From IMG/VR virus record IMGVR_UViG_3300008448_000001, positions 62,001-126,000 of that record: DNA of 64,000 bases. The stretch is one strand, 5' to 3'. The notes under the pieces were generated by a model that saw nothing but the letters and a program-made list of their open reading frames with translations, did not search any database and was not told the DNA's origin. A program made the translations under genes and the position numbers. Shown here piece after piece: positions 6,733-60,675 of the stretch. Numbering within the stretch: the stretch's first letter is position 1; every line of letters begins with the position of its first letter.

Positions 6733-6755
6733 CTAAGCACGCTCCAGCCCACTTG

Positions 6756-6784
6756 AATACCCGGCACACGCCGGGTATTTTTTT
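6756..6784 (+). terminator. Rho-independent terminator
   Basis: AATACCCGGC-ACAC-GCCGGGTATT followed by a T-run. Confidence 0.85.
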
Positions 6785-6786
6785 GC

Positions 6787-6814
6787 TTGACACTTGCCAG
6801 CTTGTGGTTATCTT
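6787..6814 (+). promoter_or_regulatory. sigma70-like promoter heading the accessory/early region
   Basis: TTGACA (6787-6792), 16 bp spacer, TATCTT (6809-6814), immediately after the terminator. Confidence 0.6.
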
Positions 6815-7673: not shown

Positions 7674-7753
7674 CGGAAGCCCTCAAGCTTGGTAAAGTAC
7701 TAAGCGATTCAAAATCGCTTTCACGGACGAAAGCAAAGCAAGTGGGAGTGGTT

Positions 7754-8158
7754 ATGCGTAAGTTGATGTTGCTCTGTGCTTTGGTCTGCAGTTCAAATGC
7801 TTTTGCACAGTCTAGCCCGTCCGATCGCCATGTTGTTTCGAGCGGATTTGTTCTCGCTCCTGGCGAGAAGATCATCGCTGTTAACGGCGTTCCTGTAGCA
7901 CAAGAAACCGTTTGCCAAGGCAGACCTGTGGTGGCCGGAAGCGTTGCCCAGGCCAAAGCACAGCAGCAAGCTGCAGAGGGACGAATGCGGCACGTTGGAG
8001 GTGGCATGGGTGCCGGTAGCTACGAGGGCGTAGGTTTCTCGACCGTGTCAGCGGAACACGCTGTTTCTAAATGTTGCTACTGGGGGCAGCGAAAAGCTAT
8101 TGACATTGGTGTCGCTCGCGGTAGAAATGGTTGGTATGCAACAGTGATTTATCGCTAG
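7754..8158 (+). CDS. Secreted small protein, CAP/SCP-like C-terminal motif
   Basis: Signal peptide MRKLMLLCALVCSSNAFA. Motif MRHVGG…YEGVG…CCYWG…GVARGRNGWYATVIY. Confidence 0.6.
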   Translation: MRKLMLLCALVCSSNAFAQSSPSDRHVVSSGFVLAPGEKIIAVNGVPVAQETVCQGRPVVAGSVAQAKAQQQAAEGRMRHVGGGMGAGSYEGVGFSTVSAEHAVSKCCYWGQRKAIDIGVARGRNGWYATVIYR

Positions 8159-8166
8159 TTGAAACA

Positions 8167-8276
8167 AGAGCGGTCGCATGATTTGATGCAGCCAAGAGGA
8201 GGTTGAGATGTTTGCTGGTAAAACCGTTAAATCCCTAAAGCAAACTTTCACGAAGGTTTAAATCCTTCCCGCTCTT
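8167..8276 (+). ncRNA. tRNA-like element 1 (enlarged anticodon region)
   Basis: Acceptor AGAGCGG/CCGCTCT, D-stem GCAT/ATGC, T-arm GAAGG-TTTAAAT-CCTTC, 3' T-run, no CCA. Confidence 0.7.
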
Positions 8277-8280
8277 TTAT

Positions 8281-8452
8281 GGGTCGGTAGCATGTCAGGA
8301 GTCATGCACGTTTTAGCCGTTGACGCGAGGTCGGTTTGGTCGGATCCGACAGCTGAGGCGATTTAATGCGAGGCATCGCAAGCAATCACGTGGACAGTAC
8401 AACTCGCAAACGACTGGCGAGGTCCTTGGAGGTTCGAATCCTCCCCGATCCT
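8281..8452 (+). ncRNA. tRNA-like element 2 (about 120-nt insert, G3.U70 pair)
   Basis: Acceptor GGGTCGG/CCGATCC, D-stem GCATG/CATGC, canonical T-arm GGAGG-TTCGAAT-CCTCC. Confidence 0.8.
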
Positions 8453-8519
8453 TTCATGGCGAAGGCCATGGCGCGCGACACCTGCCTGATGAGTGGTGTG
8501 GATGCCAGAGCACTGGCGA

Positions 8520-8618
8520 GGATCGGCGAGCATAGCGGTAACTATGCAGACTGCTTACTTTTTTCCTTTTGGTTTCTAAGCAGTTTGTGATAAGCAGGTG
8601 AAAACCCTGCCCGATCCT
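8520..8618 (+). ncRNA. tRNA-like element 3 (long anticodon hairpin with pyrimidine-rich loop)
   Basis: GGATCGG/CCGATCC, D-stem GCATAG/CTATGC, stem GACTGCTTA/TAAGCAGTT with a 19-nt loop, T-arm GCAGG-TGAAAAC-CCTGC. Confidence 0.8.
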
Positions 8619-8736
8619 TTTTGGAAGCAAGACCCCGCGAACGACGGTGCGTGCAATTGGTCGCAGAAACCGAGAAAGCTGTAATGGCAAGTATCCGCAG
8701 AAATGCGAGTCGTGACAGCCGGAGAGACGGCAACAT

Positions 8737-8811
8737 GGATCGGTAGCTAATTTGGTCAAAGCTATGGCGCTTCAAGTGCCAAAGACGCAGGTTCGAATCC
8801 TGCCCGATCCT
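8737..8811 (+). tRNA. Normal-length tRNA-like gene with UCA anticodon (candidate opal suppressor), element 4
   Basis: 75-nt cloverleaf: GGATCGG/CCGATCC; GCT/AGC D-stem with GG in the loop; anticodon stem TGGCG/TGCCA, loop CT-TCA-AG (anticodon 8772-8774); variable AAGAC; GCAGG-TTCGAAT-CCTGC; discriminator U. Confidence 0.75.
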
Positions 8812-8908
8812 TTCCTCGATGCAGTAGCGATATACGGCGAAGCACAGGAGCGAGCAAACGATGTGAACTCACTGAAATCTCATCGGGAGGCAACAGCCTA
8901 AGTTGCGA

Positions 8909-9019
8909 GGATCGGCGGCGTGGTTACACGCTCGACGGAGGAGGAGGGAACCGGCCTTAGGCCGACCGACACGCGAAAGCTGGTAGTGCGTTCCGCAGGT
9001 GCGAACCCTGCCCGATCCT
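8909..9019 (+). ncRNA. tRNA-like element 5 (purine-rich insert)
   Basis: GGATCGG/CCGATCC, D-stem GCGTG/CACGC, T-arm GCAGG-TGCGAAC-CCTGC, 3' T-run. Confidence 0.8.
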
Positions 9020-9230
9020 TTTAAAAGCAAGTTCGGCAATCACGCCTTGAGTAAGCGTGATGTTAAGGCGGTATGCGACAACGCTCTTGGGAGTCTAACC
9101 GAACCAAAACAAGTAGTTCTTTTACGGAACGAACGGAAGCGGTGAGAAAAGACGCAACACCCTAATCAAGTGATGACGACCGACATTGGAAAGCGTGACT
9201 GCGAACCCGACAGCCGGAGTGACGGCAAAT

Positions 9231-9302
9231 GCGCTGGAAGTGACTGTGGTGGCACGCTCGGGGTTTAGCCGGGAAGCGTAGGTTCGAATCCTACCTAGAG
9301 CA
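9231..9302 (+). tRNA. Degenerate tRNA (nominal UUU anticodon, non-canonical loop), element 6
   Basis: Acceptor GCGCTGG/CTAGAGC with one mismatch, anticodon stem CTCGG/CCGGG, loop GG-TTT-AG (lacks U33), T-arm GTAGG-TTCGAAT-CCTAC. Confidence 0.55.
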
Positions 9303-9305
9303 TTA

Positions 9306-9406
9306 GAACAGGCCGCGACAAGGGGCAACTTGTCAGAAGAAACGAGCAAAACCTTTTGTGAGAGACTTCCCGGAAAACGAGTGGGTCGTAAAGCCCACCC
9401 TGTTCT
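9306..9406 (+). ncRNA. Divergent tRNA-like element 7
   Basis: Terminal stem GAACAGG/CCTGTTC stacked on hairpin GTGGG-TCGTAAAG-CCCAC. 5' hairpin GACAAG/CTTGTC. 3' T-run. Confidence 0.55.
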
Positions 9407-9457
9407 TTTAAATCACTTGGAACGTTCATTCGAACTTTCCGCTTTGAAAGGGTTATT

Positions 9458-9703
9458 ATGGCAGATGTATTGGGTCGAATAGGCGTCGGCATGGCCATGC
9501 TTGGGAAACCCGGCGAGTCAAATGAGCTCAAAGCGGTTTCATTGTTTTGGCCCAAGGCTGAACCCGTGACAGATGATCCGGAAGATCCGGTCAATTTCGA
9601 AGATCTGTTCCTAACGATTCCTTGCGCAAAAGAATTGATCTTGGATCTGCAAGGTGCGATCAACGCCTTGATCGAAGGAAAAGCTTTTAACGCTGAAGAC
9701 TAG
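9458..9703 (+). CDS. Small hypothetical protein
   Basis: 81-aa ORF with upstream GAAAGGG. Confidence 0.6.
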   Translation: MADVLGRIGVGMAMLGKPGESNELKAVSLFWPKAEPVTDDPEDPVNFEDLFLTIPCAKELILDLQGAINALIEGKAFNAED

Positions 9704-9825
9704 GCTTTTATCCCTTTTAGTTTTCTTGTTGTTCGTCTTGCAGCTTATCGTCGTTAGGCTTGCGATGTACCGTGTCGTGGAGCAACGGCTGGACATAAAA
9801 GCGGATTTAAAGACTACGGAGGTAC

Positions 9826-10524
9826 TTGATGCGGCTGCCCCTTTATGATGTTGTTGATCTTGGAACAAAGAAAGGCGGAGCCTTGGTCGAGTTCTTTAAA
9901 CGAGCTTGTCTGGTCACTTTCGGCGTTGACCCTTCGCCTTGGCAACGCAGTAGAAGCATTGGCTTTGAGCGAAAGGCGGGCGAAGGCTACTGTAACAACG
10001 TAGTTCGAGCAGGTTTCAGATTTGCCATTGCGGATTTGGCCACCGAAGAGGGGCTCGCAAATCTTCCAAAAGGGAAATACTACCTCGCTTGGCATTTCTT
10101 AGAACATCTTCCCAGCAAGCAGCACTCCGATGCGGCGGTTAAGCGTGCTTTAACGCAGGCAGAAAAGGCAGCGTGGTTTCGGTTGCCAAGCTTCGAACAG
10201 GATGAGCTACAAGGGGAAGGCGTGCTCCGGAAGCACGGCATGCGGTTCACTTGGACAAACTGGAACGGCCACACGTCCCCTTACTTGCTTAGCGACTGCT
10301 TAAAAGCGATTGAAGAGTGGGGTGCAGCTAACCCGAAGAAACGTTACCAGGTGCGGGTTAAACCCGCTCGGCGTATGCTCTCTATGCGAGACGACCGGAT
10401 TGTGCCAATCGACGCACCAGTGGACACTCGCGCGTACTCTCCGGCTTTTGGCCCCAAACCCGATTTGACTTTCAGCCAGCCCGTCGTTGCGGAGTGGGAA
10501 GTCATTGTGCAAATGATGGGCTAG
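9826..10524 (+). CDS. Class I SAM-dependent methyltransferase-like protein
   Basis: Motif I-like VVDLGTKKGG, then GVD and AWHFLEHLP (motif IV-like). Confidence 0.6.
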   Translation: MMRLPLYDVVDLGTKKGGALVEFFKRACLVTFGVDPSPWQRSRSIGFERKAGEGYCNNVVRAGFRFAIADLATEEGLANLPKGKYYLAWHFLEHLPSKQHSDAAVKRALTQAEKAAWFRLPSFEQDELQGEGVLRKHGMRFTWTNWNGHTSPYLLSDCLKAIEEWGAANPKKRYQVRVKPARRMLSMRDDRIVPIDAPVDTRAYSPAFGPKPDLTFSQPVVAEWEVIVQMMG

Positions 10525-10541
10525 GGTTAAAGTTTGTTCCC

Positions 10542-10685
10542 GGATCGGCGGCATGGCGTATCCATGACGCAGTACGGCAAAGCGTTATCTCGCAATCGGC
10601 GAAACCCTGTTAGGACACGGCGGCAGGGAGAGTCGGTGCCATCGTGAAGCGAGAATGCAGCAGGTAACCAAGCCTGCCCGATCCT
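10542..10685 (+). ncRNA. tRNA-like element 8 (isolated copy between genes)
   Basis: GGATCGG/CCGATCC, D-like hairpin CATGG/CCATG, T-arm GCAGG-TAACCAAG-CCTGC, 3' TTTT. Confidence 0.75.
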
Positions 10686-10733
10686 TTTAAGTTTGAATCC
10701 AGCAACAAGCGGCGAGGCCGAAAAGGGGTCGAA

Positions 10734-11006
10734 GTGACACACGAAGGACGCACAAGCGGTTGGGACATTCGTTTGCAATGCACAATATGCGGTTTCCGCT
10801 CGAGGTCAAATCGATACGAGGGCGATCCTCCAATGGGGCACGAGCCACCAGCAACTGTCGAGCGTGATTGCTCCAACTGCGACGCGGAAGCGAACTACCC
10901 CGAGGGCGGAGTCAAGACGGTGCATTTTGTCGATATCGCAAGCGACGCCGAGATTTCGGAAGAGCGATACAATGGATACAACCAACGGCCAAAGTGTGGT
11001 CTGTAA
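10734..11006 (+). CDS. Small zinc-ribbon protein
   Basis: CTIC…CSNC pairs. Flanked by an 18-nt direct repeat with one mismatch. Confidence 0.55.
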   Translation: MTHEGRTSGWDIRLQCTICGFRSRSNRYEGDPPMGHEPPATVERDCSNCDAEANYPEGGVKTVHFVDIASDAEISEERYNGYNQRPKCGL

Positions 11007-11032
11007 GTTTCACACAGCGGCGAGGCCGCAAA

Positions 11033-11057
11033 GCAGGTTTGAAGCCTGCCCGATACT
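11033..11057 (+). ncRNA. 3' half (T-arm plus acceptor strand) of a tRNA-like element
   Basis: GCAGG-TTTGAAG-CCTGC-CCGATAC-TTTT. No matching 5' strand found nearby. Confidence 0.5.
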
Positions 11058-11085: not shown

Positions 11086-11469
11086 ATGGCTATCAAAAAC
11101 ATTCCGGATGGTTGGGAGTTTGCGGGAGTTGGAAAGGTTAAGCGGGGCGAGTTTTATTTAAGCGAAGAAGGTCGTGCGCATGAGTGGACAGCAAGTGCCG
11201 AAAGCGGCTTCGTTAACTACGTCATTATCCACAAGGTCGAAAAGCCGAAGCGGTACCGCCCGTTCAAGGATACGGTAGAGTACATGCCACATCACGGCAG
11301 ACCTATTCGTAGAAGAGGCGGAAGAGGATTCGACGTCATTGTCAGTGCAGCGGATTTCACTTTGTTTGTTGCAAATGGCGACAAGATCATAGAGGTGGAC
11401 CTGCAACAGGCCTTTGATAACTGGGAATTCGTCGACGGAACCCCCTTCGGCGTTGAGGTGACGGAATGA
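11086..11469 (+). CDS. Hypothetical protein, paralog A
   Basis: SD AGGAG before ATG 11086. IPDGWE…YRPF…DGTPFGVEVTE shared with 11704..12069. Confidence 0.75.
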   Translation: MAIKNIPDGWEFAGVGKVKRGEFYLSEEGRAHEWTASAESGFVNYVIIHKVEKPKRYRPFKDTVEYMPHHGRPIRRRGGRGFDVIVSAADFTLFVANGDKIIEVDLQQAFDNWEFVDGTPFGVEVTE

Positions 11470-11703
11470 TCGACGCCAAGCAGTTGCACGAAATCCTGGC
11501 GGATTTTGATCCTACGCAAAAGCACAAAGTCTACTGAGCAAGTCAGCATTGTTCCCGATCCTTTTTGTCGCGACTCGCAAGAGGTCGACTATAGCGGCGG
11601 TAATTCAGAAGCGAACAAGGCGAAGCCTTTAAGGCAATATGGACACGGTTTCGAGTACCAGTTAACCTCGCGACTTTTTTGTTTGTTTTTACCTGGGAGA
11701 TTG

Positions 11704-12069
11704 ATGATGCAGATTGAAGGAATACCGGACGGGTGGGAGTTGGTGAGGTTTGATTACGCCACAGATGGTGAGCGGTACTTAGATGGAAGCGGGGACATTG
11801 TGCATCACCTCGGTGCAAAGCCAACGCAAGCAAAGCGGTTAATTATCCGCAAGATCGAAAAATACCGCCCGTTTGCGAATACTGCGGAAGCGGAAGTCAT
11901 GTGGGATGCAAAGCTGCAACTCAAGGAACATAGCGATGATAAGTTTAGGGTTACTGCGATTCGTGTGACTGGCGTTGTTATCGGTGCATCGTGGTATAAC
12001 TACGAGGAGGCTTTTGAAAGGTTCGAGTGCGTCGACGGAACCCCGTTTGGCGTTGAGGTGACAGAATGA
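11704..12069 (+). CDS. Hypothetical protein, paralog B
   Basis: SD GGGAG. Same N- and C-terminal motifs as paralog A. Confidence 0.75.
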   Translation: MMQIEGIPDGWELVRFDYATDGERYLDGSGDIVHHLGAKPTQAKRLIIRKIEKYRPFANTAEAEVMWDAKLQLKEHSDDKFRVTAIRVTGVVIGASWYNYEEAFERFECVDGTPFGVEVTE

Positions 12070-13293: not shown

Positions 13294-14109
13294 ATGACTG
13301 AAGACGCGAAGTACAATGAGTTGGTTTACTTGGATCTGCTCGCAAACGTTTTGAAGCGTGGGACAAGGAGAGAGGATAGGACGGGGACAGGTACGATAAG
13401 TATCTTTGGAGCACAGGCGGTTTACGACCTGTATGACTCTTTCCCGTTGCTTACGACCAAGCGTGTACCGTTTAGACACGTGGCGGAGGAGCTGTTCTGG
13501 TTTCTTAGGGGGGAGACGAATGTGAGGTCACTACAGGCCAAAGGTGTCTCAATTTGGGACGAATGGGCTGACGAGAATGGTGACCTTGGGCCGGTCTATG
13601 GCAAGCAGTGGCGAGACTTCAATGGCGTAGATCAAGTTTCTCTAATACAAAACCAGATTATTGACAATCCGAATTCCAGAAGAATTTTGCTAAGTTCTTG
13701 GAATCCGCCGGAAATTTCCGCCATGGCTTTACCGCCGTGCCACACGCTGGTGCAGTTCTACGTTTCGCCGCGGTTCAACAAACTGCATCTGGATTGCCAG
13801 TTGTATCAGCGGAGTGCCGACATGTTTTTGGGTGTGCCTTTCAACATTGCGTCCTATTCCTTGCTGACTGTTTTACTGGCGAAAACCGCTAAGCTGCTAC
13901 CGGGTCGTTTTATCCACACCCTGGGCGATGCGCACATTTACCTCAACCATGTCGAGCAAGTGGAAACGCAACTTGCTCGCGAGGTTGGCAGACCTCCGGT
14001 CCTTGGCGTCAGGACGTCACGGCCTAACGTTTGGGAGTACGTGTACAACGATCTTGTGTTGGAAAACTATCACCCACAACCGGCTATTGCCGCAAAGGTC
14101 GCGGTCTGA
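13294..14109 (+). CDS. thyA: Thymidylate synthase
   Basis: DRTGTGT, FPLLTTKRV, LGPVYGKQWR, catalytic MALPPCH, YQRSADMFLGVPFNIASY, GDAHIYLNH. Confidence 0.98.
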   Translation: MTEDAKYNELVYLDLLANVLKRGTRREDRTGTGTISIFGAQAVYDLYDSFPLLTTKRVPFRHVAEELFWFLRGETNVRSLQAKGVSIWDEWADENGDLGPVYGKQWRDFNGVDQVSLIQNQIIDNPNSRRILLSSWNPPEISAMALPPCHTLVQFYVSPRFNKLHLDCQLYQRSADMFLGVPFNIASYSLLTVLLAKTAKLLPGRFIHTLGDAHIYLNHVEQVETQLAREVGRPPVLGVRTSRPNVWEYVYNDLVLENYHPQPAIAAKVAV

Positions 14110-27202: not shown

Positions 27203-27317
27203 CAGTATTAGCTTTGCGTGTACTGCGTTATTTTCTCTTGCGTCAGCTGGCAGTCACTTTACGCTTTGACTATACTGCTTGACCGGGTTTTTGTTTGTCT
27301 CATGTACAGAGGTAGCT

Positions 27318-29600
27318 ATGAGTTCGTCGTCGTTGTTTGCTGGTGAAGTTGTGCGTCGTGATGGTAGTGTTGTTCCGCATAATAGGGAGAAGTTAATCTC
27401 GGCTTTTACGCGTTGTTTGGAGGCTTCCCGGGACGCAGGGGAGTCTACAACGAAGACGTGGCTTTCTGTCGGGAGCACAGTCGAGAAGTTGGCTGATGCC
27501 GCCGCTACTTTTGCGGAAGAGGCAATGGCGGAGCTTACCGATCCTGTGCCTATTGCGGAAATAAGCCGTGTTTGTTCGCGTGTTTTAATGGAGCTCAATT
27601 TGTACGAGGCAGCCGCCCGTTATTTGCGTTACAGCGACGAGAAAGATCGCAATCGCAAAAGAACATTGAGCCAGGATTTGATTGACGCTTTTGCGGTCAA
27701 CGCGAAGTACTTCAAGAACCCCATTCAATGCTTTCAGGTTCTTGACAAGTTTGCGAGGTACATTCCCGAAAAGGGTCGCCGCGAAAACTGGGAAGAAACC
27801 GTGGATCGGACTTTGAATTATTTTCTTGGACATTGCACCGAGAAAGGTTATTCGTTGTCGCAAGCAGTGTGGGACAGCCTTCGCGACGGTCTTTTGCATT
27901 TGAAAGCTTCCCCGTCGATGCGATGCGTCCAGATGGCGGGTCCTGCACTTCAACGCTGCCAGGTCGGTGTGTACAACTGTGCTTTCCAGTTTCTGCAGTC
28001 TACTGGAGATCTCGCTGAAGAGCTTTACATCTTGATGCAGGGCACGGGAGCAGGTTTTTCGGTCGAGCATGAGTACGCGGTCGAAAAGTTTCCCCGCGTT
28101 AAGCGGCAGAAGAAAAACAACGGACCTAGTGTGCACGTTGTCGAAGACACTACTGAGGGTTGGTGTGCGGCGTACAAGCTGGGGCTCGATACTTGGTTCA
28201 ACGGAGAAGACGTTGAATTTAACTTCAGCGAGGTCCGACCCGAGGGAACACCGTTGAAGACGAAGGGCGGAAGAGCGTCCGGGCCTGGGCCTTTGAAAGA
28301 CTTGCTGGATTTCTCCCGCAACAAAATACTTTCAAAGCAAGGGCGATACCTTACTTCGTTGGACTTGCACGACATCAACTGCTTTGCGCATCGTATTGTG
28401 AAGATGGGTGGTGTTCGGCGAGCCAGCGGTATCAGCATTTCCGACTTGAACGATAACGAAATGCGGGATTGCAAGCACGGAGAATTCTGGCACACGAACA
28501 GTCAGCGAAATCAAGCCAACAACTCTGCGGCGTACGAGGAGAAGCCAGACTCGGTTACTTTCCTGCAGGAATGGCTTGCCTTGGCAAAGTCGGGATCCGG
28601 CGAGCGAGGCATTTTCAATCGAGGTTCCTTCAAGCACACGTTCCCTAAGCGACGCAAGCTGCAAGGTCATGTCTTTGGCACCAATCCGTGCGGTGAGATC
28701 ATCCTGCGACACAAACAGTTTTGCAACTTGTCTATTGCGGTCGTTCGTCCCGAGGACACGCTTGCAGACATCAAGAAGAAAATCGAGCTCGCGACTATCT
28801 GGGGAACGCTCCAGTCCACGATGACAGACTTCAAGTATCTGGGCCCCGAGTGGAAGAAGAACTGCGAAGAGGAGCGACTGTTGGGTGTTGACTTGCTCGG
28901 TTTCTTGGACAATCCGCTTTTCCAGGACAACGCAGTTGCGGCTAAGGCTTTGGACGAGTTGCGAGAGTACACTATTGCAATCAACGCGGTGTGGGCAGCG
29001 CACTTCGGCATTAACCAATCTGCCGCATTGACTTGCATTAAACCTTCTGGCGACAGCAGTGTTCTGTTCGACACGGCGGCAGGCTTTAAGGGGCATCACG
29101 GCAAATTCTTTGTGCGTCGAACGCGTTCGGGCTTGTCAAATCCGTTGGCGCTTATGCTCAGAGAGGCGGGTGTTCCTTGCCACGAAGATTACGACGGAAG
29201 TGGCTATGTTCTCGAGTGGCCGATGAAGGCACCTGCGAACGGTGTATTGCTTTCCGCACAGACAGCCATGTCGCAGTTGGAACAGTGGAAGACCTTCAAG
29301 TTGCATTGGACAGAGCATAACCCGAGCGTGACAATTTACGTTCGACCTGACGAATGGTTGGCTGTCGGTAATTGGGTTTACGAGAACTGGAACATCGTTG
29401 GTGGTCTAAGCTTCATGCCTTACGACGGTGGTTGTTATTCTCTTGCTCCGTATGAAGAAATCTCCGAAGAGAACTACAACGCTCGCGTAGCGGCTTTCCC
29501 TAAGGACATTAACTGGGCAAAGCTTGTTCACTACGAGACCGAAGACATGACGGATCTTCAGCAGCAGTTTGCGTGCACGGGCGACAAGTGTACGATTTAA
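27318..29600 (+). CDS. nrdJ: Class II (B12-dependent) ribonucleotide reductase with N-terminal ATP cone
   Basis: VVRRDG ATP cone, YNCAF, GGVRRA, TNPCGEI, CNL, KPSG, EHNPS, C-terminal ACTGDKC. No intein-sized insertion. Confidence 0.93.
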   Translation: MSSSSLFAGEVVRRDGSVVPHNREKLISAFTRCLEASRDAGESTTKTWLSVGSTVEKLADAAATFAEEAMAELTDPVPIAEISRVCSRVLMELNLYEAAARYLRYSDEKDRNRKRTLSQDLIDAFAVNAKYFKNPIQCFQVLDKFARYIPEKGRRENWEETVDRTLNYFLGHCTEKGYSLSQAVWDSLRDGLLHLKASPSMRCVQMAGPALQRCQVGVYNCAFQFLQSTGDLAEELYILMQGTGAGFSVEHEYAVEKFPRVKRQKKNNGPSVHVVEDTTEGWCAAYKLGLDTWFNGEDVEFNFSEVRPEGTPLKTKGGRASGPGPLKDLLDFSRNKILSKQGRYLTSLDLHDINCFAHRIVKMGGVRRASGISISDLNDNEMRDCKHGEFWHTNSQRNQANNSAAYEEKPDSVTFLQEWLALAKSGSGERGIFNRGSFKHTFPKRRKLQGHVFGTNPCGEIILRHKQFCNLSIAVVRPEDTLADIKKKIELATIWGTLQSTMTDFKYLGPEWKKNCEEERLLGVDLLGFLDNPLFQDNAVAAKALDELREYTIAINAVWAAHFGINQSAALTCIKPSGDSSVLFDTAAGFKGHHGKFFVRRTRSGLSNPLALMLREAGVPCHEDYDGSGYVLEWPMKAPANGVLLSAQTAMSQLEQWKTFKLHWTEHNPSVTIYVRPDEWLAVGNWVYENWNIVGGLSFMPYDGGCYSLAPYEEISEENYNARVAAFPKDINWAKLVHYETEDMTDLQQQFACTGDKCTI

Positions 29601-40842: not shown

Positions 40843-42807
40843 ATGGCATTAGAAACAACTGTAGGCCAGATTCTAGTAAACGACGTGTTACCGGAGGAAC
40901 TACGCGACTACAGCCGTACTTTGGACAAGTCGGCACTTAGCTCGTTGCTCAAGGATGTCGCGAGAAAGCATCCCGAGAAGTACAGGGACATCTCCTTTCA
41001 GCTCAATCAGATAGGCCGACATTCGGCACAGGAGCAGGGCGGTTTGTCTTTCGGGGCCAGGCACCTTCGAAAGAGTAAGGCAGCTGCCGCCATTCAGGAC
41101 AGGATAAAGGGTGAGTTGTTTGGCATTCTTGCCGACGACAATTTAACCGACCAGCAACGCACAGACAAAATTGTACGCGTGGTAGGTCGTGAAAGTTCTG
41201 CGCAACAGCGTGCAGTACTGGACGAGGCCGTGAAAGAAGGCAATCCTTTAGGCCTACAAGTTCTCTCGGGGTCTCGGGGTAAGCCGATGAACCTTGCCAG
41301 CTTGCTAGCCGCCGACATGCTTTACTCGGATCACCGCGACGAAGTCATACCGGTACCTGTGCTTAGAAGTTACAGCCAAGGGTTGACGCCAGCGGAGTAT
41401 TGGGCAGGCACATACGGGGCCCGCCGAGGTATTATTGCCACGAAGTTTGCTACGCAGGAAGCAGGATTTTTGTCGAAACAGCTCAATCAAGCCGGGCACA
41501 GGCTTGTTGTCGTCGACGAAGAAAGCGAGGATGAGAATCCTGGTTTGCGGGGTTTGATCGTCGATACCGATGATATGGATAACGAAGGAGCTTTGCTTGC
41601 CCAGGACACCGGTCCGTTTCACCGCAACACTCCCCTCACCCCGAAAATACTCAAGCAGCTTAAGCGACTCGGCAAGGATCGGATTCTGGTTCGCTCTCCG
41701 CTTATTGGAGGTTCACCCGAGGGTGGCGTTTATGCGAGAGATGTCGGCGTACGTGAGAAGGGCCTCCTTCCAGGCCGGGGCGAGCAAGTAGGTTTACAGG
41801 CCGCCCAGGCGCTCAGCGAACCGATTAGTCAGGGCCAGCTTTCTGCCAAGCACTCCGGGGGTGTGGCAGGGCAAGAAAAAGCTGTTGGTGGTTTTCAATA
41901 CATCAACCAACTAATTCAAACACCTAAAAAAATGCAAGGCGGTGCGGCACATTCTACTGTCGACGGCGTTGTTCAGCGGATTGAACCAGCACCTGCCGGA
42001 GGTAACTACGTCACGGTCGGTGGCGAGCGGCATTATGTGAACGCGGGCTATGAACTCAAGGTCAAGCGAGGCGACGACGTAGAAGCCGGTGACATGCTAA
42101 GCGAAGGCATCCCAAATCCGGCGATTATCACGAAGTACAAGGGTGTAGGCGAGGGTCGTCGCTATTTCGTGCAGGAGTTCAAAAAGGCGATGTCTTCCAG
42201 TGGCATGCTCGGGCATCGGCGGAACATTGAGCTGCTTGCAAGAGGTTTGATAAATCACGTGCGTCTTACCGAGGAAGTCGGTGACCATGTCGAAGACGAT
42301 ATCGTACCGTACACGACACTTGAACACACTTACAAGCCACGCGACGGTTTTCAAGCGTTGGCTCCCAAAAAGGCGGTGGGTAAATACCTGGAAAGGCCTG
42401 TTTTGCATTACACGATAGGCACTAAAGTTCGCCCGTCCATGTTAAAAGATTTTGACGATTTCGGCGTGAGCTCGCTGGAAGTCCATGACGCTCCTCCGCC
42501 TTTCGAGTCGCACATGGTTCGTGGGATGTACCAGCTGCAGCACGATCCGGACTGGCTAACGCAGATGTACGGGTCGGGTCTAAAAGAAAGCCTGCTGGAA
42601 TCTACGGCACGCGGGGCGACTAGCGAAGAACGCGGGTCTAGCTTTGTTCCAAGCTTGGCGACAGGGACGGATTTCGGCGACGTCCCGAATCGAGTTGTCA
42701 TACAACCCAAGGCACCGTACGCTTTGCCGGACGTACCGATACCTGATATACCAGAAGTTAAGGATAGTCTCATATCGTCAAAAAGTCTCACACCGAGACT
42801 CCTGTAA
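40843..42807 (+). CDS. rpoC: RNA polymerase beta' C-terminal chain (bridge helix, trigger loop)
   Basis: TTVGQ, SGSRG, GLTPAEYW…GARRGIIATKFATQEAGFLSKQL (bridge helix), GEQVGLQAAQALSEPISQ…KHSGG (trigger loop), RRNIELL. Confidence 0.92.
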   Translation: MALETTVGQILVNDVLPEELRDYSRTLDKSALSSLLKDVARKHPEKYRDISFQLNQIGRHSAQEQGGLSFGARHLRKSKAAAAIQDRIKGELFGILADDNLTDQQRTDKIVRVVGRESSAQQRAVLDEAVKEGNPLGLQVLSGSRGKPMNLASLLAADMLYSDHRDEVIPVPVLRSYSQGLTPAEYWAGTYGARRGIIATKFATQEAGFLSKQLNQAGHRLVVVDEESEDENPGLRGLIVDTDDMDNEGALLAQDTGPFHRNTPLTPKILKQLKRLGKDRILVRSPLIGGSPEGGVYARDVGVREKGLLPGRGEQVGLQAAQALSEPISQGQLSAKHSGGVAGQEKAVGGFQYINQLIQTPKKMQGGAAHSTVDGVVQRIEPAPAGGNYVTVGGERHYVNAGYELKVKRGDDVEAGDMLSEGIPNPAIITKYKGVGEGRRYFVQEFKKAMSSSGMLGHRRNIELLARGLINHVRLTEEVGDHVEDDIVPYTTLEHTYKPRDGFQALAPKKAVGKYLERPVLHYTIGTKVRPSMLKDFDDFGVSSLEVHDAPPPFESHMVRGMYQLQHDPDWLTQMYGSGLKESLLESTARGATSEERGSSFVPSLATGTDFGDVPNRVVIQPKAPYALPDVPIPDIPEVKDSLISSKSLTPRLL

Positions 42808-59291: not shown

Positions 59292-59884
59292 CAAAAACCG
59301 CACCCGCATTCGTGACCGTGGAAGCGGTTACACAGATCGCCAACGGAAACATGGGGACGTTGCGCACGTTGGATTTGACGACAAAGTTCGGCGCTACGTT
59401 GTTGGTGTGGCTCGGACGCCGAGCCGCAACCACGCCGATTCGCGCCGCATACGTGGCAATCCGAAATTCGGACAACAACACACGCGTGTTTCCCGGTCCA
59501 GCAGCGTTCGACGTTGCAAACCAGGCACCGACGACCGCCGCACCCGCCACCACGTTGTCCGCAGCCGCAGCCGCGAACCAAAACCAATTAACGGTGGCAA
59601 GCGTGGTTGGGTTTTCGGTGGGGGACGTGGTGTTGATTTCCGGTGCCAGTGGAGCGCGTGCCCAATGGGGACGAATTGCGCAAATATCCGGTTCGGTGAT
59701 TACGTTGGAACGTGACCTACGCGACGGAAACGACAACGGGGACAACGTTGTTGGGTTGGCCGACGCCCGCCGCGTTCTGTTGCCCGGTGGCGACGTGTAC
59801 GAAATCCGTTGCGTTAACTTTTCGGGTCTGGATTGCGTGTTTGCCGTGGAAGCAATAACCGACGAAGGGGAAACCATCGCGTGA
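59279..59884 (+). CDS. Beta-rich structural protein
   Basis: TTLSAAAAA…LTVASVVGFSVGDVVLI module. Confidence 0.7.
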   Translation: MATVTKTAPAFVTVEAVTQIANGNMGTLRTLDLTTKFGATLLVWLGRRAATTPIRAAYVAIRNSDNNTRVFPGPAAFDVANQAPTTAAPATTLSAAAAANQNQLTVASVVGFSVGDVVLISGASGARAQWGRIAQISGSVITLERDLRDGNDNGDNVVGLADARRVLLPGGDVYEIRCVNFSGLDCVFAVEAITDEGETIA

Positions 59885-60675
59885 AAGCGTTCGCAAGGCC
59901 GGGTTTTGATTGGTTGTTGGACGGTTGCCGGGGCATTTGGTCACCCGTGGTATCGGGAAACACCGGCGCCACCGTCCTCGATATTAACCCGACAACAGAC
60001 AACCACGGCGCGTTGTCCGGTATGACCGCCGCCCAAGCATGGCAGCAATCGACAATTGGCAACGTGTTGGCGTTTGATGGCGCTAATGATTCGGTGACAA
60101 TTGCAACCGCCGAAACACTCACAACCTACCCGTTCACCCTAGCAAACTGGGTTTATCATCCGAGTACAATACCCGACACTACCGCCGCGTTAACGTTATC
60201 GGTGGGTGTTGGGCAAACACAGTATTTTGCTATTGGTTACAGGCAGGCAACGCCGCGACCCGGTATTTTCGCGCGGAACACCACGTTTACCAATAACGCC
60301 AACTACACCACGACGTTCAACCCCGGTTGGGTATCTTTGGTTGGCGTGTTCGTATCCGCTACACGCCGTGAATTGTGGGTCGATGGCCGGTTGTTAGCCG
60401 TATCAACAACGAGCGTTCCGCAGTTGGCCAGCGTTTCATCGGTCCGATTAGGTTCCGGATTCACTCAATTGTACTACCCGCAACGGATTGCCGAAGCAAT
60501 CGTACACGCACAGCGTTGGACCCCCGAGCAAATTGCACAGTACGTCGAAGCGGGGCCGGGTGGCGCGTTAACGTTGCAGCCTCCGACCCGCCGCCGATCC
60601 AGGTATTTACCAAGCACGCCACCACCAACAAACAACCGACGACGAACATCTCGGTTGGTTTGCTACCCGGGATAG
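59881..60675 (+). CDS. LamG/concanavalin-A-like lectin domain protein
   Basis: LAFDGANDSV, FTLANWV, WVSLVGVF, LWVDG. Confidence 0.8.
   Translation: MKAFARPGFDWLLDGCRGIWSPVVSGNTGATVLDINPTTDNHGALSGMTAAQAWQQSTIGNVLAFDGANDSVTIATAETLTTYPFTLANWVYHPSTIPDTTAALTLSVGVGQTQYFAIGYRQATPRPGIFARNTTFTNNANYTTTFNPGWVSLVGVFVSATRRELWVDGRLLAVSTTSVPQLASVSSVRLGSGFTQLYYPQRIAEAIVHAQRWTPEQIAQYVEAGPGGALTLQPPTRRRSRYLPSTPPPTNNRRRTSRLVCYPG

Follow-up and report, generated by a model that had tools for sequence, protein, structure and literature searches.

Small RNAs that share part of the architecture of tRNAs without serving in decoding have been described in several systems. Phage T4 encodes two small stable RNAs, rnaC (species 1 RNA) and rnaD (species 2 RNA), inside its tRNA gene cluster directly after tRNA-Arg, and their roles are still unknown (PMC3014915). 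The t-elements of plant mitochondria are acceptor/T-arm mimics without decoding function which sit at the ends of messenger RNAs and contribute to the formation of 5' and 3' ends (PMC1920247). Cutting of t-elements is performed by RNase P and RNase Z. The C4 antisense RNAs of phages P1 and P7 and the CI RNA of P4 are regulatory RNAs whose 5' end is made by RNase P, because part of the RNA mimics a tRNA acceptor helix, while their loops carry the functional sequence. In tmRNA the 5' and 3' ends form an acceptor stem with a T arm and no anticodon. Bacterial Y RNAs (YrlA) are non-coding RNAs with a tRNA-like module and are also found in phages (PMC4201824). In murine gammaherpesvirus 68, tRNA-like units recruit host tRNA-processing enzymes to release small RNAs, and engineered tRNA scaffolds and tRNA-guide arrays exploit the same enzymes, the scaffolds with a cargo RNA exactly where the anticodon arm was.

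The locus analysed here lies in a window of 64 kb from a 205-kb genome, in the nucleotide-metabolism region of a jumbo phage that most likely infects Planctomycetota. Its plus strand carries between 8167 and 11056 one good tRNA gene with anticodon UCA, hence a UGA suppressor (E4), one degenerate tRNA-Lys-like gene (E6), six full-length tRNA-framed elements and one degenerate copy (E9) (Table 1). All keep an acceptor stem and a T stem. The six full-length elements also keep a D hairpin and hold an unrelated structured insert of 40-125 nt in place of the anticodon arm and variable region. The eight elements listed in the initial annotation were found where it had placed them, and its observation is confirmed. 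Some details required correction, since the T loops of E7 and E8 have 8 nt, E4 is a normal tRNA and E6 is a near-threshold tRNA. The degenerate copy E9 and a 3' remnant downstream of it had been missed. None of the eight elements is followed by CCA and all are followed by T; E6 has a discriminator A and then TT.

Table 1. Features of the tRNA-framed RNA array (window coordinates). R1, score of a covariance model of the frame; z, folding energy relative to shuffled sequence.
Feature	Position	Strand	Length (nt)	Acceptor pair	T stem	T loop	Other features	R1 (bits)	z
E1	8167-8275	+	109	AGAGCGG/CCGCTCT	GAAGG/CCTTC	TTTAAAT	tRNA-framed RNA; starts just after the stop codon of ORF 7742-8158; insert holds AGGAGG, an ATG and a 17-codon ORF	17.3 (filters off)	-2.49
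E2	8281-8451	+	171	GGGTCGG/CCGATCC	GGAGG/CCTCC	7 nt	tRNA-framed RNA; G3.U70 pair; branched insert of about 120 nt		
Leader of E3	8504-8519	+					hairpin GCCAG-AGCA-CTGGC followed by GA, ending directly before E3		
E3	8520-8617	+	98	GGATCGG/CCGATCC	GCAGG/CCTGC	TGAAAAC	tRNA-framed RNA; 10-bp stem capped by a U-rich loop in the anticodon-arm position	28.1	-4.50
Leader type A	8718-8736	+					hairpin GCCG-GAGAGA-CGGC followed by AACAT, directly before E4		
E4	8737-8811 (frame read as 8737-8810)	+		GGATCGG/CCGATCC	GCAGG/CCTGC	7 nt	canonical tRNA, anticodon UCA (reads UGA)		
Leader type B	8890-8908	+					hairpin GCAAC-AGCCTAA-GTTGC followed by GA, directly before E5		
E5	8909-9018	+	110	GGATCGG/CCGATCC	GCAGG/CCTGC	TGCGAAC	tRNA-framed RNA; D hairpin GCGTG-GTTA-CACGC; insert with a GGAGGAGGAGGG run	38.7	-0.57
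Leader type A variant	9213-9230	+					hairpin GCCG-GAGTGA-CGGC followed by AAAT, directly before E6		
E6	9231-9302	+		GCGCTGG/CTAGAGC (one G.A mismatch)	GTAGG/CCTAC	7 nt	degenerate tRNA-Lys(UUU)-like gene; non-standard anticodon loop	23.7	
E7	9306-9405	+	100	GAACAGG/CCTGTTC	GTGGG/CCCAC	8 nt	tRNA-framed RNA; directly before ORF 9458-9703		-2.45
E8	10542-10684	+	143	GGATCGG/CCGATCC	GCAGG/CCTGC	TAACCAAG (8 nt)	tRNA-framed RNA; starts 18 nt after the stop of ORF 9826-10524		
E9	10953-11056	+					degenerate copy; intact T arm and 3' acceptor strand (11031-11056, CCGATAC followed by a T run); 5' strand pairs only in part and lies inside the end of ORF 10734-11006; two non-standard acceptor pairs	17.3	
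3' remnant	11554-11566	+					CCCGATCC plus TTTTT, between the paralogous ORFs 11086-11469 and 11705-12069		

A set of searches was conducted to test whether these elements belong to a described RNA class. With the Rfam tRNA model (RF00005) only E4 passed the threshold, with 55.7 bits, whereas E6 scored 27.7 bits against a cut-off of 29 and the six tRNA-framed elements gave no match even at E <= 10. ARAGORN called only E4, and at a relaxed score threshold also E6 as tRNA-Lys(UUU); E3 received no tRNA call at either setting. No Rfam family covers the tRNA-framed elements. The unconstrained minimum-energy fold of each of the eight forms the acceptor stem and the T hairpin, and all but E6 also form a D hairpin in both the minimum-energy and the centroid fold. 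However, E5, E6, E8 and E2 do not fold better than shuffled sequence (z = -0.57 to +0.54 and -1.2 to -1.6).

The recurrence of the frame exceeds chance. The 15-mer CCTGCCCGATCCTTT occurs 6 times with up to 2 mismatches, against 0.18 expected. The covariance model R1, built from other phages, found E4, E5, E3, E6, E8, E9 and E2 in the 64 kb with default filters, and E1 in a filters-off search of 7900-10950. The only hit outside the array was a weak one at 60553-60600 on the minus strand. E7 is the weakest member, as it was detected by its predicted fold and a structural detector but not by R1, and no homologue was found. A purely structural scan without sequence constraints has a high background of about 6 per strand per 64 kb, and the argument is carried by the sequence family and the clustering.

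The same frame, often letter for letter, occurs in dozens of uncultured phage contigs, and the family is widespread in uncultured phages linked to Planctomycetota. The exact 21-mer of the 3' module was found in 30 IMG/VR contigs and the 5' module in 19, and the 3' module also occurs in Phycisphaerales, Planctomycetaceae and Pirellula metagenome bins. In 600 kb of fetched loci (cited by L numbers in what follows), R1 gave 87 hits at E <= 0.05, of which 76 were distinct. In the resulting alignment, which was fitted to the model and includes true tRNAs, 98.2% of pair cells are standard pairs and 11 of 12 pairs show changes on both sides. There are 70 such cells against 8.7 in shuffles, with 0 of 500 shuffles as high, and sliding the partner columns dropped pairing to 27-53%. 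The structural detector, run on 3.5 kb downstream of one shared gene in 12 loci, gave 51 hits on the gene strand and 3 on the other strand. The units are modular: only 15 small similarity groups form among 82 distinct elements, so most inserts are unrelated. The acceptor pair of E1 carries a different insert in L056:7175-7246, and E8 sits at different map positions in different phages. At the position of E1, a related phage has L056:6426-6509 with a different but fully paired acceptor stem.

Where orthologues exist (E2 and E8), the insert is better conserved than the neighbouring protein gene and shows compensating base changes. The orthologue of E2, L056:6923-7094, has 86% identity in the insert and 82% over the whole element, in comparison to 78% for the DNA of the adjacent gene, while the spacers cannot be aligned. 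Eight pairs changed on both sides and stayed paired, 1 in the acceptor stem, 2 in the T stem and 5 in the insert helices, and none of the 53 predicted pairs is broken. Orthologues of E8 lie in L066, L074, L082/L084 and L083, with 89-91% identity for L066 and L074, although the upstream signal-peptide gene used as synteny marker (7742-8158) is only about 70% identical at DNA level in L074. The five distinct E8 orthologues share a 90-95% identical core with compensating changes in the D stem; three pairs changed on both sides, and the changes cluster in the D loop and the T loop. Over 13 orthologue groups 46 pairs vary, of which 13 compensate, 29 keep pairing after a one-sided change and 4 break. 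For E1, E3, E5 and E7 no orthologue was found in the fetched loci, and selection on their inserts is thus not indicated by any result.

The context of the elements fits RNA processing. Across the loci, small GC-rich hairpins end 2-5 nt before the first acceptor base, and their stems show compensating variants. Leader type A recurs before tRNAs and tRNA-framed elements in at least 12 loci, and type B stands before elements in L003, L028, L051 and L056. T-rich trailers follow the elements, and the tandem units E1/E2 and E6/E7 are separated by only 3-5 nt. The frames, or pieces of them, also sit at the borders of gene cassettes, where they come with conserved leader hairpins and a conserved trailer. 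This point was missed in the initial annotation and suggests an additional or rival role in cutting up messenger RNA. Simple consensus scans, however, found no more promoter-like or terminator-like sites than in shuffled sequence.

Among the described systems, T4 rnaC is the closest cultured analogue. When folded here, rnaC (139 nt) showed a canonical T arm, CCGGG-UUCGAAU-CCCGG, next to its 3' end, an imperfect closing stem and two long hairpins where the rest of a tRNA would be, the layout also seen in the array around E4. No sequence similarity was seen, rnaD showed no T arm, and T4 has two such RNAs rather than an array with one shared frame, interchangeable frames and inserts, and conserved leaders and trailers. 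Location at the ends of coding units, as in t-elements, holds for E7, E8, E9 and the remnant and for elements alternating with small ORFs in L021 and L056, but not for the ORF-free run E1 to E6; t-elements are minimal organellar mimics without large structured inserts and do not form tandem arrays. The Rfam library, which includes the C4 family, gave no match, and C4 and CI are single genes, not a family with one shared frame. The longest antisense matches of the inserts within the window, which excludes the rest of the phage genome and the host, were 10-13 nt and within the range given by shuffled inserts. E2 alone has the G3.U70 pair that marks alanine acceptors, and this pair is lost in its orthologue; there is no tag reading frame and no pseudoknot architecture, and neither ARAGORN nor Rfam calls the elements tmRNA. 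Rfam gave no match to Y RNAs either, and no Ro60/TROVE match appeared among 30 window ORFs scanned, a part of the total. The topology of YrlA is reported to be inverted, with the RNA ends forming the Ro-binding stem and the tRNA-like part internal, whereas here the RNA ends form the acceptor stem. In the herpesvirus the cargo lies downstream of the tRNA-like unit and the host is eukaryotic, and the engineered scaffolds are man-made. We know of no natural bacterial or phage family with the cargo inside the frame, and our literature searches found none.

The interpretation in the initial annotation, that the phage uses a tRNA frame as a repeat and processing unit to cut one early transcript into small RNAs with variable cargo, is partly supported. 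The repeated frame with unrelated inserts, its absence from Rfam and the retention of stems by compensating changes while the loops drift were borne out, and two of the conditions named beforehand as refuting, a known Rfam family and stem decay in homologues, turned out in its favour. The single early transcript, cleavage by RNase P or RNase Z and the cargo roles remain inferences; the proposed antisense guides found no support inside the window, and protein sponges or decoys for tRNA-targeting defences stand as hypotheses only. What our data establish are the fold, the family, selection on the stems and on the inserts of E2 and E8, and modular exchange of frames and inserts, whereas transcription, processing, stability and any function of the inserts are inferred.

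The reading as processed, cargo-bearing RNAs is given a probability of roughly 0.6. A possible but less favoured alternative is that the frames act only as punctuation, giving neighbouring messenger RNAs defined ends by processing, insulation or termination, with the inserts mostly as passengers. Besides the elements at ORF borders, this view is favoured by a conserved trailer in nine loci, which reads TTTTGCCAAACCACTTCGGGGCGGCG, then GGAGG and an ATG, and precedes unrelated ORFs, by leader hairpins which could protect upstream 3' ends, and by very short members with almost no insert (62 nt in L036 and a 48-nt hairpin in L051), which fit a pure processing or boundary role better than cargo delivery. 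On the other hand, E1 to E7 stand in a row with no ORF between them, the inserts of E2 and E8 are more conserved than the adjacent genes and spacers and show compensating changes, and a passenger would not be kept at 90-95% identity while the T loop beside it is saturated with changes. It is unlikely that the frames are merely DNA-level repeats, either recombination linkers that shuffle cassettes or copies of integration sites derived from the 3' end of a host tRNA, with RNA structure incidental in either case. Frame modules are indeed identical in phages whose shared proteins are only 45-82% identical, solitary 3' halves lie at cassette borders, frames and inserts occur in different combinations and E8 has moved on the map. 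A Phycisphaerales tRNA-Tyr ends in the same 24-mer, which does not pair with its own 5' end, as an integration junction would look. The strand-specific detection and the compensating changes in acceptor, T, D and insert helices argue against it, and an integration site needs neither a D hairpin nor a 5' acceptor strand and would not come in rows of seven. This role may nevertheless exist in addition to the RNA role.

Decay of a tRNA cluster duplicated from one scaffold, with insertions in the anticodon region, is already disfavoured. E6 is a decayed tRNA, fragments exist (E9, the remnant and a tRNA 5' half without a T arm in L056), and the L056 unit with the E4-type leader and frame (6737-6808) has a short, odd anticodon arm and is called tRNA-Gln by ARAGORN, where E4 is a UGA suppressor. 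The stems are however kept rather than decaying, inserts are conserved across phages, and a distinct D arm, GCGTG-GTGGGAA-CACGC, is conserved in the non-tRNA members but absent from the true tRNAs that share the frame. Least likely are tRNA genes interrupted by introns. With introns allowed, ARAGORN parsed some members as tRNAs with introns of 15-141 nt, for example E5 as tRNA-Leu(GAG) with a 20-nt intron, but 46 of 83 family sequences received no call. The same RNA was called Leu(CAG) in L002 and L052 and Ser(GGA) in L047, with scattered intron positions, and the call for E5 is therefore not credible. Rfam returned no group I intron or ribozyme match, the inserts are far shorter than self-splicing introns, and bacteria are not known to possess the protein enzyme that splices tRNA.

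In the most likely mechanism, which is inferred, the units are transcribed together with the neighbouring genes. RNase P (5' end), RNase Z (3' end of genes without CCA, here followed by U) and the CCA-adding enzyme accept acceptor/T-arm helices without an anticodon arm, and the host tRNA-maturation enzymes would therefore cut each unit out of a polycistronic transcript. T loops and D loops drift freely among orthologues, however, and some T loops lack the usual TTC and their D loops lack GG, so that the tRNA elbow which helps RNase P to dock may not form in many members. Each insert would be released as a stable small RNA held in a nuclease-resistant tRNA-like frame, the flanking spacers and gene cassettes would receive defined ends, and a small hairpin just upstream of each cut would protect the new 3' end of the upstream RNA. 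The diversity of the inserts and the sequence conservation of loops in E8 favour binding of specific partners, be they proteins or host nucleic acids, over pairing with the phage's own messages.

The stretch under study belongs to IMGVR_UViG_3300008448_000001, a viral contig of 204,794 bp whose genes run on the + strand in this region. Nearby are a NUDIX hydrolase, an ATPase fused to a ferritin-like domain, thymidylate synthase, glycosyl- and sulfotransferases, a ribonucleotide reductase with an ATP cone and a fragment of a multisubunit RNA polymerase beta' subunit, a gene content typical of a jumbo phage. The exact 3' module of the tRNA frame was also present in metagenome bins labelled Phycisphaerales, Planctomycetaceae and Pirellula, from which we infer that the host phylum is probably Planctomycetota.

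ARAGORN found a single gene in the whole window, the tRNA of element E4 with the anticodon TCA, and Rfam at curated thresholds found the same tRNA and nothing else. When the threshold was relaxed to E <= 10 over positions 7900-10900, Rfam added only element E6 as a sub-threshold tRNA (27.7 bits against 29), together with sub-threshold mascRNA and plastid-leader matches which lie on E4 and E6 and are tRNA look-alikes. Reading of the sequence confirmed the eight elements (E1 to E8) proposed in the initial annotation with their acceptor and T stems; the observation thus holds. Each unconstrained minimum-energy fold formed the acceptor stem and the T hairpin, and all but that of E6 also formed a stable D hairpin. 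The description required corrections: E6 has one G.A mismatch in its acceptor stem, E7 and E8 have T loops of 8 nt, and two further partial copies are present, E9 and a remnant of the 3' end of the frame. None of the elements is followed by CCA, and all are followed by T (in E6, discriminator A and then TT). A purely geometric scan for an acceptor stem plus a T stem has a chance background too high to serve as evidence on its own. The argument is carried by the repeated 15-mer (6 copies against 0.18 expected), by the clustering on one strand and by a covariance model of the frame built only from other phages (model R1). This model retrieved E4, E5, E3, E6, E8, E9 and E2 in the 64 kb, and E1 in a filters-off search of 7900-10950. 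It gave only one weak hit outside the array (14.5 bits, E 0.74), which begins GGATCGGCGGCGGG, lies opposite a + strand ORF and is probably due to chance. E7 is supported by its fold only.

Features discussed in the text. Window denotes the analysed stretch; loci with the prefix L are retrieved stretches of viral contigs and metagenome bins.
Locus	Position	Strand	Feature
Window	7742-8158		Gene upstream of the array, begins with a typical signal peptide
Window	8199-8262		AGGAGG, 4-nt spacer, ATG and 17-codon ORF inside E1
Window	8452-8519		Spacer containing the string CTGATGAG
Window	8504-8519, 8718-8736, 8890-8908, 9213-9230		Small GC-rich leader hairpins
Window	8548-8566		Pyrimidine-rich loop exposed by E3, CUUUUUUCCUUUUGGUUUC
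Window	8936-8949		Purine run in E5, GGAGGAGGAGGGAA
Window	8737-8811		E4, tRNA with anticodon UCA
Window	9231-9302		E6, sub-threshold tRNA
Window	9826-10524		ORF inside the array
Window	10542-10684		E8
Window	10953-11056		E9, partial copy
Window	11554-11566		Remnant of the 3' end of the frame
Window	11086-11469 and 11705-12069		Paralogous ORFs with near-identical 3' ends
Window	40843-42807, 27279-29600, 13294-14109		RNA polymerase beta' fragment, ribonucleotide reductase with ATP cone, and thymidylate synthase
Window	59833-60675	+	ORF opposite the weak R1 match
Window	60553-60600	-	Weak match to model R1
L056	6923-7094		Orthologue of E2
L066	6537-6678		Orthologue of E8
L074	2531-2673		Orthologue of E8
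L082	5767-5907		Orthologue of E8
L083	4793-4930		Orthologue of E8
L021	2633-2772		Member of the 140-nt family
L041	11045-11184		Member of the 140-nt family
L006	9396-9537		Member of the 140-nt family
L028	804-883		80-nt element read by ARAGORN as having anticodon CUA
L056	10633-10705 and 6737-6808		Suppressor tRNA with CUA, and unit with the E4-type leader and frame called tRNA-Gln(UUG)
L056	7605-7640		Weaker form of the conserved trailer
L033	6289-6377		tRNA-Tyr call ending in the 24-mer of the phage frame (Phycisphaerales bin)
L034	6300-6484		T arm and 3' acceptor strand followed by a tRNA 5' half (Planctomycetaceae bin)
L051	11566-11613		48-nt near-perfect hairpin made of the 5' module of the frame and its reverse complement

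The 21-mer GGTTCGAATCCTGCCCGATCC occurs in 30 IMG/VR contigs, and in most of them ARAGORN detected no tRNA at that place. In most, the 5' module GGATCGG-CG-GCGTG-GTGGGAA-CACGC lies 60-185 nt upstream with unrelated sequence in between, and this 5' module alone is present in 19 contigs. The same acceptor and T arm also carry true tRNAs, namely Thr(UGU) in the loci L009, L011, L014 and L017 and the UGA suppressor of the window. Stop-codon suppressor tRNAs recur in these phages, with UCA in the window and CUA in L056, a related phage, and ARAGORN also read the amber-suppressor anticodon CUA into an element of L028, whereas in L056 the unit with the E4-type leader and frame was called tRNA-Gln(UUG). 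The long ORFs of the window read normally in the standard code, so wholesale recoding is not evident. Cellular tRNAs (Arg, Ser) in unrelated bacteria end in the same 24-mer, which shows that the 3' module is an ordinary tRNA end. Model R1 gave 87 hits, 76 of them distinct, in 600 kb of retrieved loci. Neither the 2.6-kb region nor a 79-nt member matched the cultured phages of the INPHARED collection, apart from trivial T-arm similarity to a Salmonella phage tRNA-Arg, and our literature searches revealed no description of the family.

To assess whether the frame is under selection, pairing was first evaluated at family level on the model-fitted alignment, an initial MAFFT alignment with mixed acceptors having misaligned the ends. 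In total 98.2% of pair cells were standard pairs and 11 of 12 pairs showed changes on both sides, with 70 double-change cells against 8.7 in shuffles (0 of 500 shuffles as high). Sliding the partners by one to three columns dropped pairing to 27-53%. Since this alignment is fitted to the model and includes true tRNAs, it shows that a tRNA-type frame is maintained, but not more. Less circular evidence came from orthologues defined by insert or flank similarity. Between E2 and its orthologue in L056 the acceptor changes C5-G68 to A-U, two pairs of the T stem change on both sides, five insert pairs compensate and none of 53 pairs is broken. Over all 13 orthologue groups 46 pairs vary, of which 13 compensate, 29 keep pairing after a one-sided change and 4 break, although the structures in this comparison derive from RNAalifold, which rewards covariation. 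A structural detector applied to 3.5 kb downstream of the shared upstream gene in 12 loci found 51 elements on the gene strand and 3 on the opposite strand; their acceptor stems are many and different, and all are paired.

As far as sequence comparison can tell, the inserts of E2 and E8 are functional. E2 is 82% identical overall to its L056 orthologue and 86% identical in the insert, whereas the adjacent protein gene is 78% identical at the DNA level and the spacers between elements cannot be aligned apart from the short leaders. E8 has five distinct orthologues in seven contigs with a core of 90-95% identity that includes predicted loops, while the gene upstream of the array is about 70% identical at the DNA level in L074. 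In the E8 family and in an unrelated 140-nt family the changes pile up in the T loop and the D loop: within orthologous elements whose inserts are 90-95% identical these loops differ almost completely, the T loops being TAACCAAG, TATACAAA, TGTGAAT and TGCAAAT in one family and TGAAAAT, TAGCCAAT and TTCGAAT in the other. We read this as a high neutral rate that the stems and the cargo resist, which also means that the classical tRNA elbow is probably dispensable in those lineages. Across the family, certain D-loop types tend to go with certain T-loop types, for example GTGGGAA with TTCGAAT and CGGYAA with TGAAAAY, which could reflect a loop-loop contact or merely sub-lineages of the frame. No homologue of E1, E3, E5 or E7 was found in the retrieved loci, so that the evidence for insert function does not extend to them. 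Only 15 small similarity groups formed among 82 distinct elements, hence most inserts are unique.

Most elements are preceded by a small GC-rich hairpin ending 2-5 nt before the first acceptor base. Two leader types recur widely, GACAGCCGGAGAGACGGCA and GGCAAC-N-GCCTAAGTTGCGA, and stem variants such as GCCG/CGGC, GCCT/AGGC, GGTCG/CGGCC and GCCGG/CCGGC keep the pairing, some of them by compensating changes. A phage polymerase could mean that the conserved leaders are promoter-related, but we think that the compensating changes argue for an RNA hairpin. E. coli-type scans for promoters and terminators gave nothing above the shuffled background. Many elements are followed by a T run. In nine loci a conserved 26-nt trailer follows, TTTTGCCAAACCACTTCGGGGCGGCG, and then GGAGG and the ATG of unrelated ORFs in different phages (downstream of elements in L028, L029, L024, L016, L006, L039, L056 and L044, with a weaker form in L056); it resembles a shared cassette junction or 5' untranslated region. 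In the window, E7, E8, E9 and the 3' remnant sit at ORF borders, and in L021 and L056 elements alternate with small ORFs. The two paralogous ORFs near the end of the array each have the same upstream TTTTGTTTGTTTT...GGAGATTG stretch, and upstream of each lies a copy or remnant of the 3' end of the frame, directly before the first and about 100 nt further up for the second, which looks like a cassette duplicated together with its boundary. Frames and inserts occur in different combinations, and E8 lies at different map positions in different phages.

Parts of the frame were also observed in other loci. In L033 a tRNA-Tyr call ends in the exact 24-mer of the phage frame, but this 3' strand does not pair properly with the gene's own 5' end, as would be seen at a phage integration junction in a tRNA gene. 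In L034 a T arm plus 3' acceptor strand (TCGTCTCC) is followed 12 nt later by a tRNA 5' half beginning GGAGACGG, resembling a permuted or split tRNA, and the unit then ends in the phage-type 3' module. The hairpin of L051 consists of the 5' module of the frame (acceptor plus D arm) and its reverse complement, ends in CCCGATCC followed by a T run and appears to be a palindromic derivative of the frame.

A set of searches was directed at the possible role of the inserts. Insert matches to the window did not exceed those of shuffled inserts, thus no antisense target above chance lies in the window. The 40 unrelated representative inserts share no enriched 5- or 6-mer beyond the start of the T stem, with AGGAG only mildly raised, and only E1 has a Shine-Dalgarno sequence, an ATG and a short ORF, which ends in the T loop and is probably a chance occurrence. 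The pyrimidine-rich loop of E3, the purine run of E5 and the AGGAGG of E1 resemble anti-Shine-Dalgarno and Shine-Dalgarno sequences and hint at ribosome-related or mutual pairing, but this is pure speculation with no statistical support beyond the mild AGGAG enrichment. The string in the spacer before E3 suggested a hammerhead ribozyme, yet Rfam gave no match. No linked RNA-handling protein was found: the ORFs near arrays in 50 loci clustered into no universal neighbour, the commonest being a PDDEXK nuclease, RecT and unknowns. The gene upstream of the array is syntenic with tRNA-framed arrays in 12 distinct viral contigs besides the window's own and recurs in metagenome contigs, where a partial scan with its protein added few new arrays. 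It has no family match, and given its signal peptide it is probably not an RNA partner. The ORF inside the array has only a sub-threshold methyltransferase match and no PDB or NCBIfam match, and its 50% relative in L032 is not next to an array. Protein binding or host targets are the remaining options for the inserts.

The acceptor/T-stem helix is the common recognition element of RNase P, RNase Z and the CCA-adding enzyme, none of which needs an anticodon arm, and genes without CCA and with U after the discriminator are typical substrates of RNase Z. We therefore think that the units are cut out of longer transcripts by the host tRNA-maturation enzymes, which would release frame-held small RNAs and would also trim the neighbouring RNAs, the leader hairpin protecting the new upstream 3' end. 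The fold, the family and the selection are demonstrated by the sequence comparisons, whereas transcription, processing and any role of the cargo are inferred in the absence of expression data. The proposal of the initial annotation, a tRNA frame serving as a processing unit for small RNAs with variable cargo, is consequently supported only in part.

Among the alternatives, a pure punctuation role is the strongest and may be part of the truth, but it does not explain the ORF-free run E1-E7 or the conserved inserts. A DNA-level role as recombination linkers fits the letter-perfect frames and the shuffling of modules and may hold in addition, although it does not explain the strand bias or the compensating changes. 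The same compensating changes, together with the distinct conserved D arm, disfavour pseudogenes, and tRNAs bearing introns are disfavoured because the intron calls disagree between orthologues and Rfam gives no ribozyme match.

The closest cultured analogue is T4 rnaC. When the T4 tRNA cluster was retrieved and rnaC folded, it showed a canonical T arm next to its 3' end, an imperfect closing stem and two long hairpins; its role is still unknown (PMC3014915). Plant mitochondrial t-elements, the P1 C4 and P4 CI RNAs, tmRNA, YrlA and herpesviral tRNA-linked small RNAs each share one aspect with the elements and fail on others. The family is large, modular and absent from Rfam.

A more far-reaching and unlikely, though not excluded, possibility is that the tRNA frame is a universal socket into which planctomycete phages plug structured RNA modules and trade them by recombination at the conserved frame, leader and trailer sequences. 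Each phage would thereby assemble its own library of RNA decoys or inhibitors aimed at host RNA-binding defence or translation factors, an RNA counterpart of the protein anti-defence gene islands, with the frame supplying expression, processing, stability and perhaps CCA addition.

The conserved frame makes the family simple to search for, and each insert then becomes a candidate functional RNA that can be tested one at a time. If these RNAs are processed and stable, phages have arrived naturally at the design that RNA engineers use, a cargo RNA held in a tRNA scaffold and released by the tRNA-maturation enzymes, and would also have diversified it into dozens of unrelated cargos. That would give a new and easily recognised class of phage non-coding RNAs in a poorly studied host phylum, and a handle on the long-standing question of what the non-tRNA stable RNAs of phage tRNA clusters, T4 rnaC and rnaD, do.
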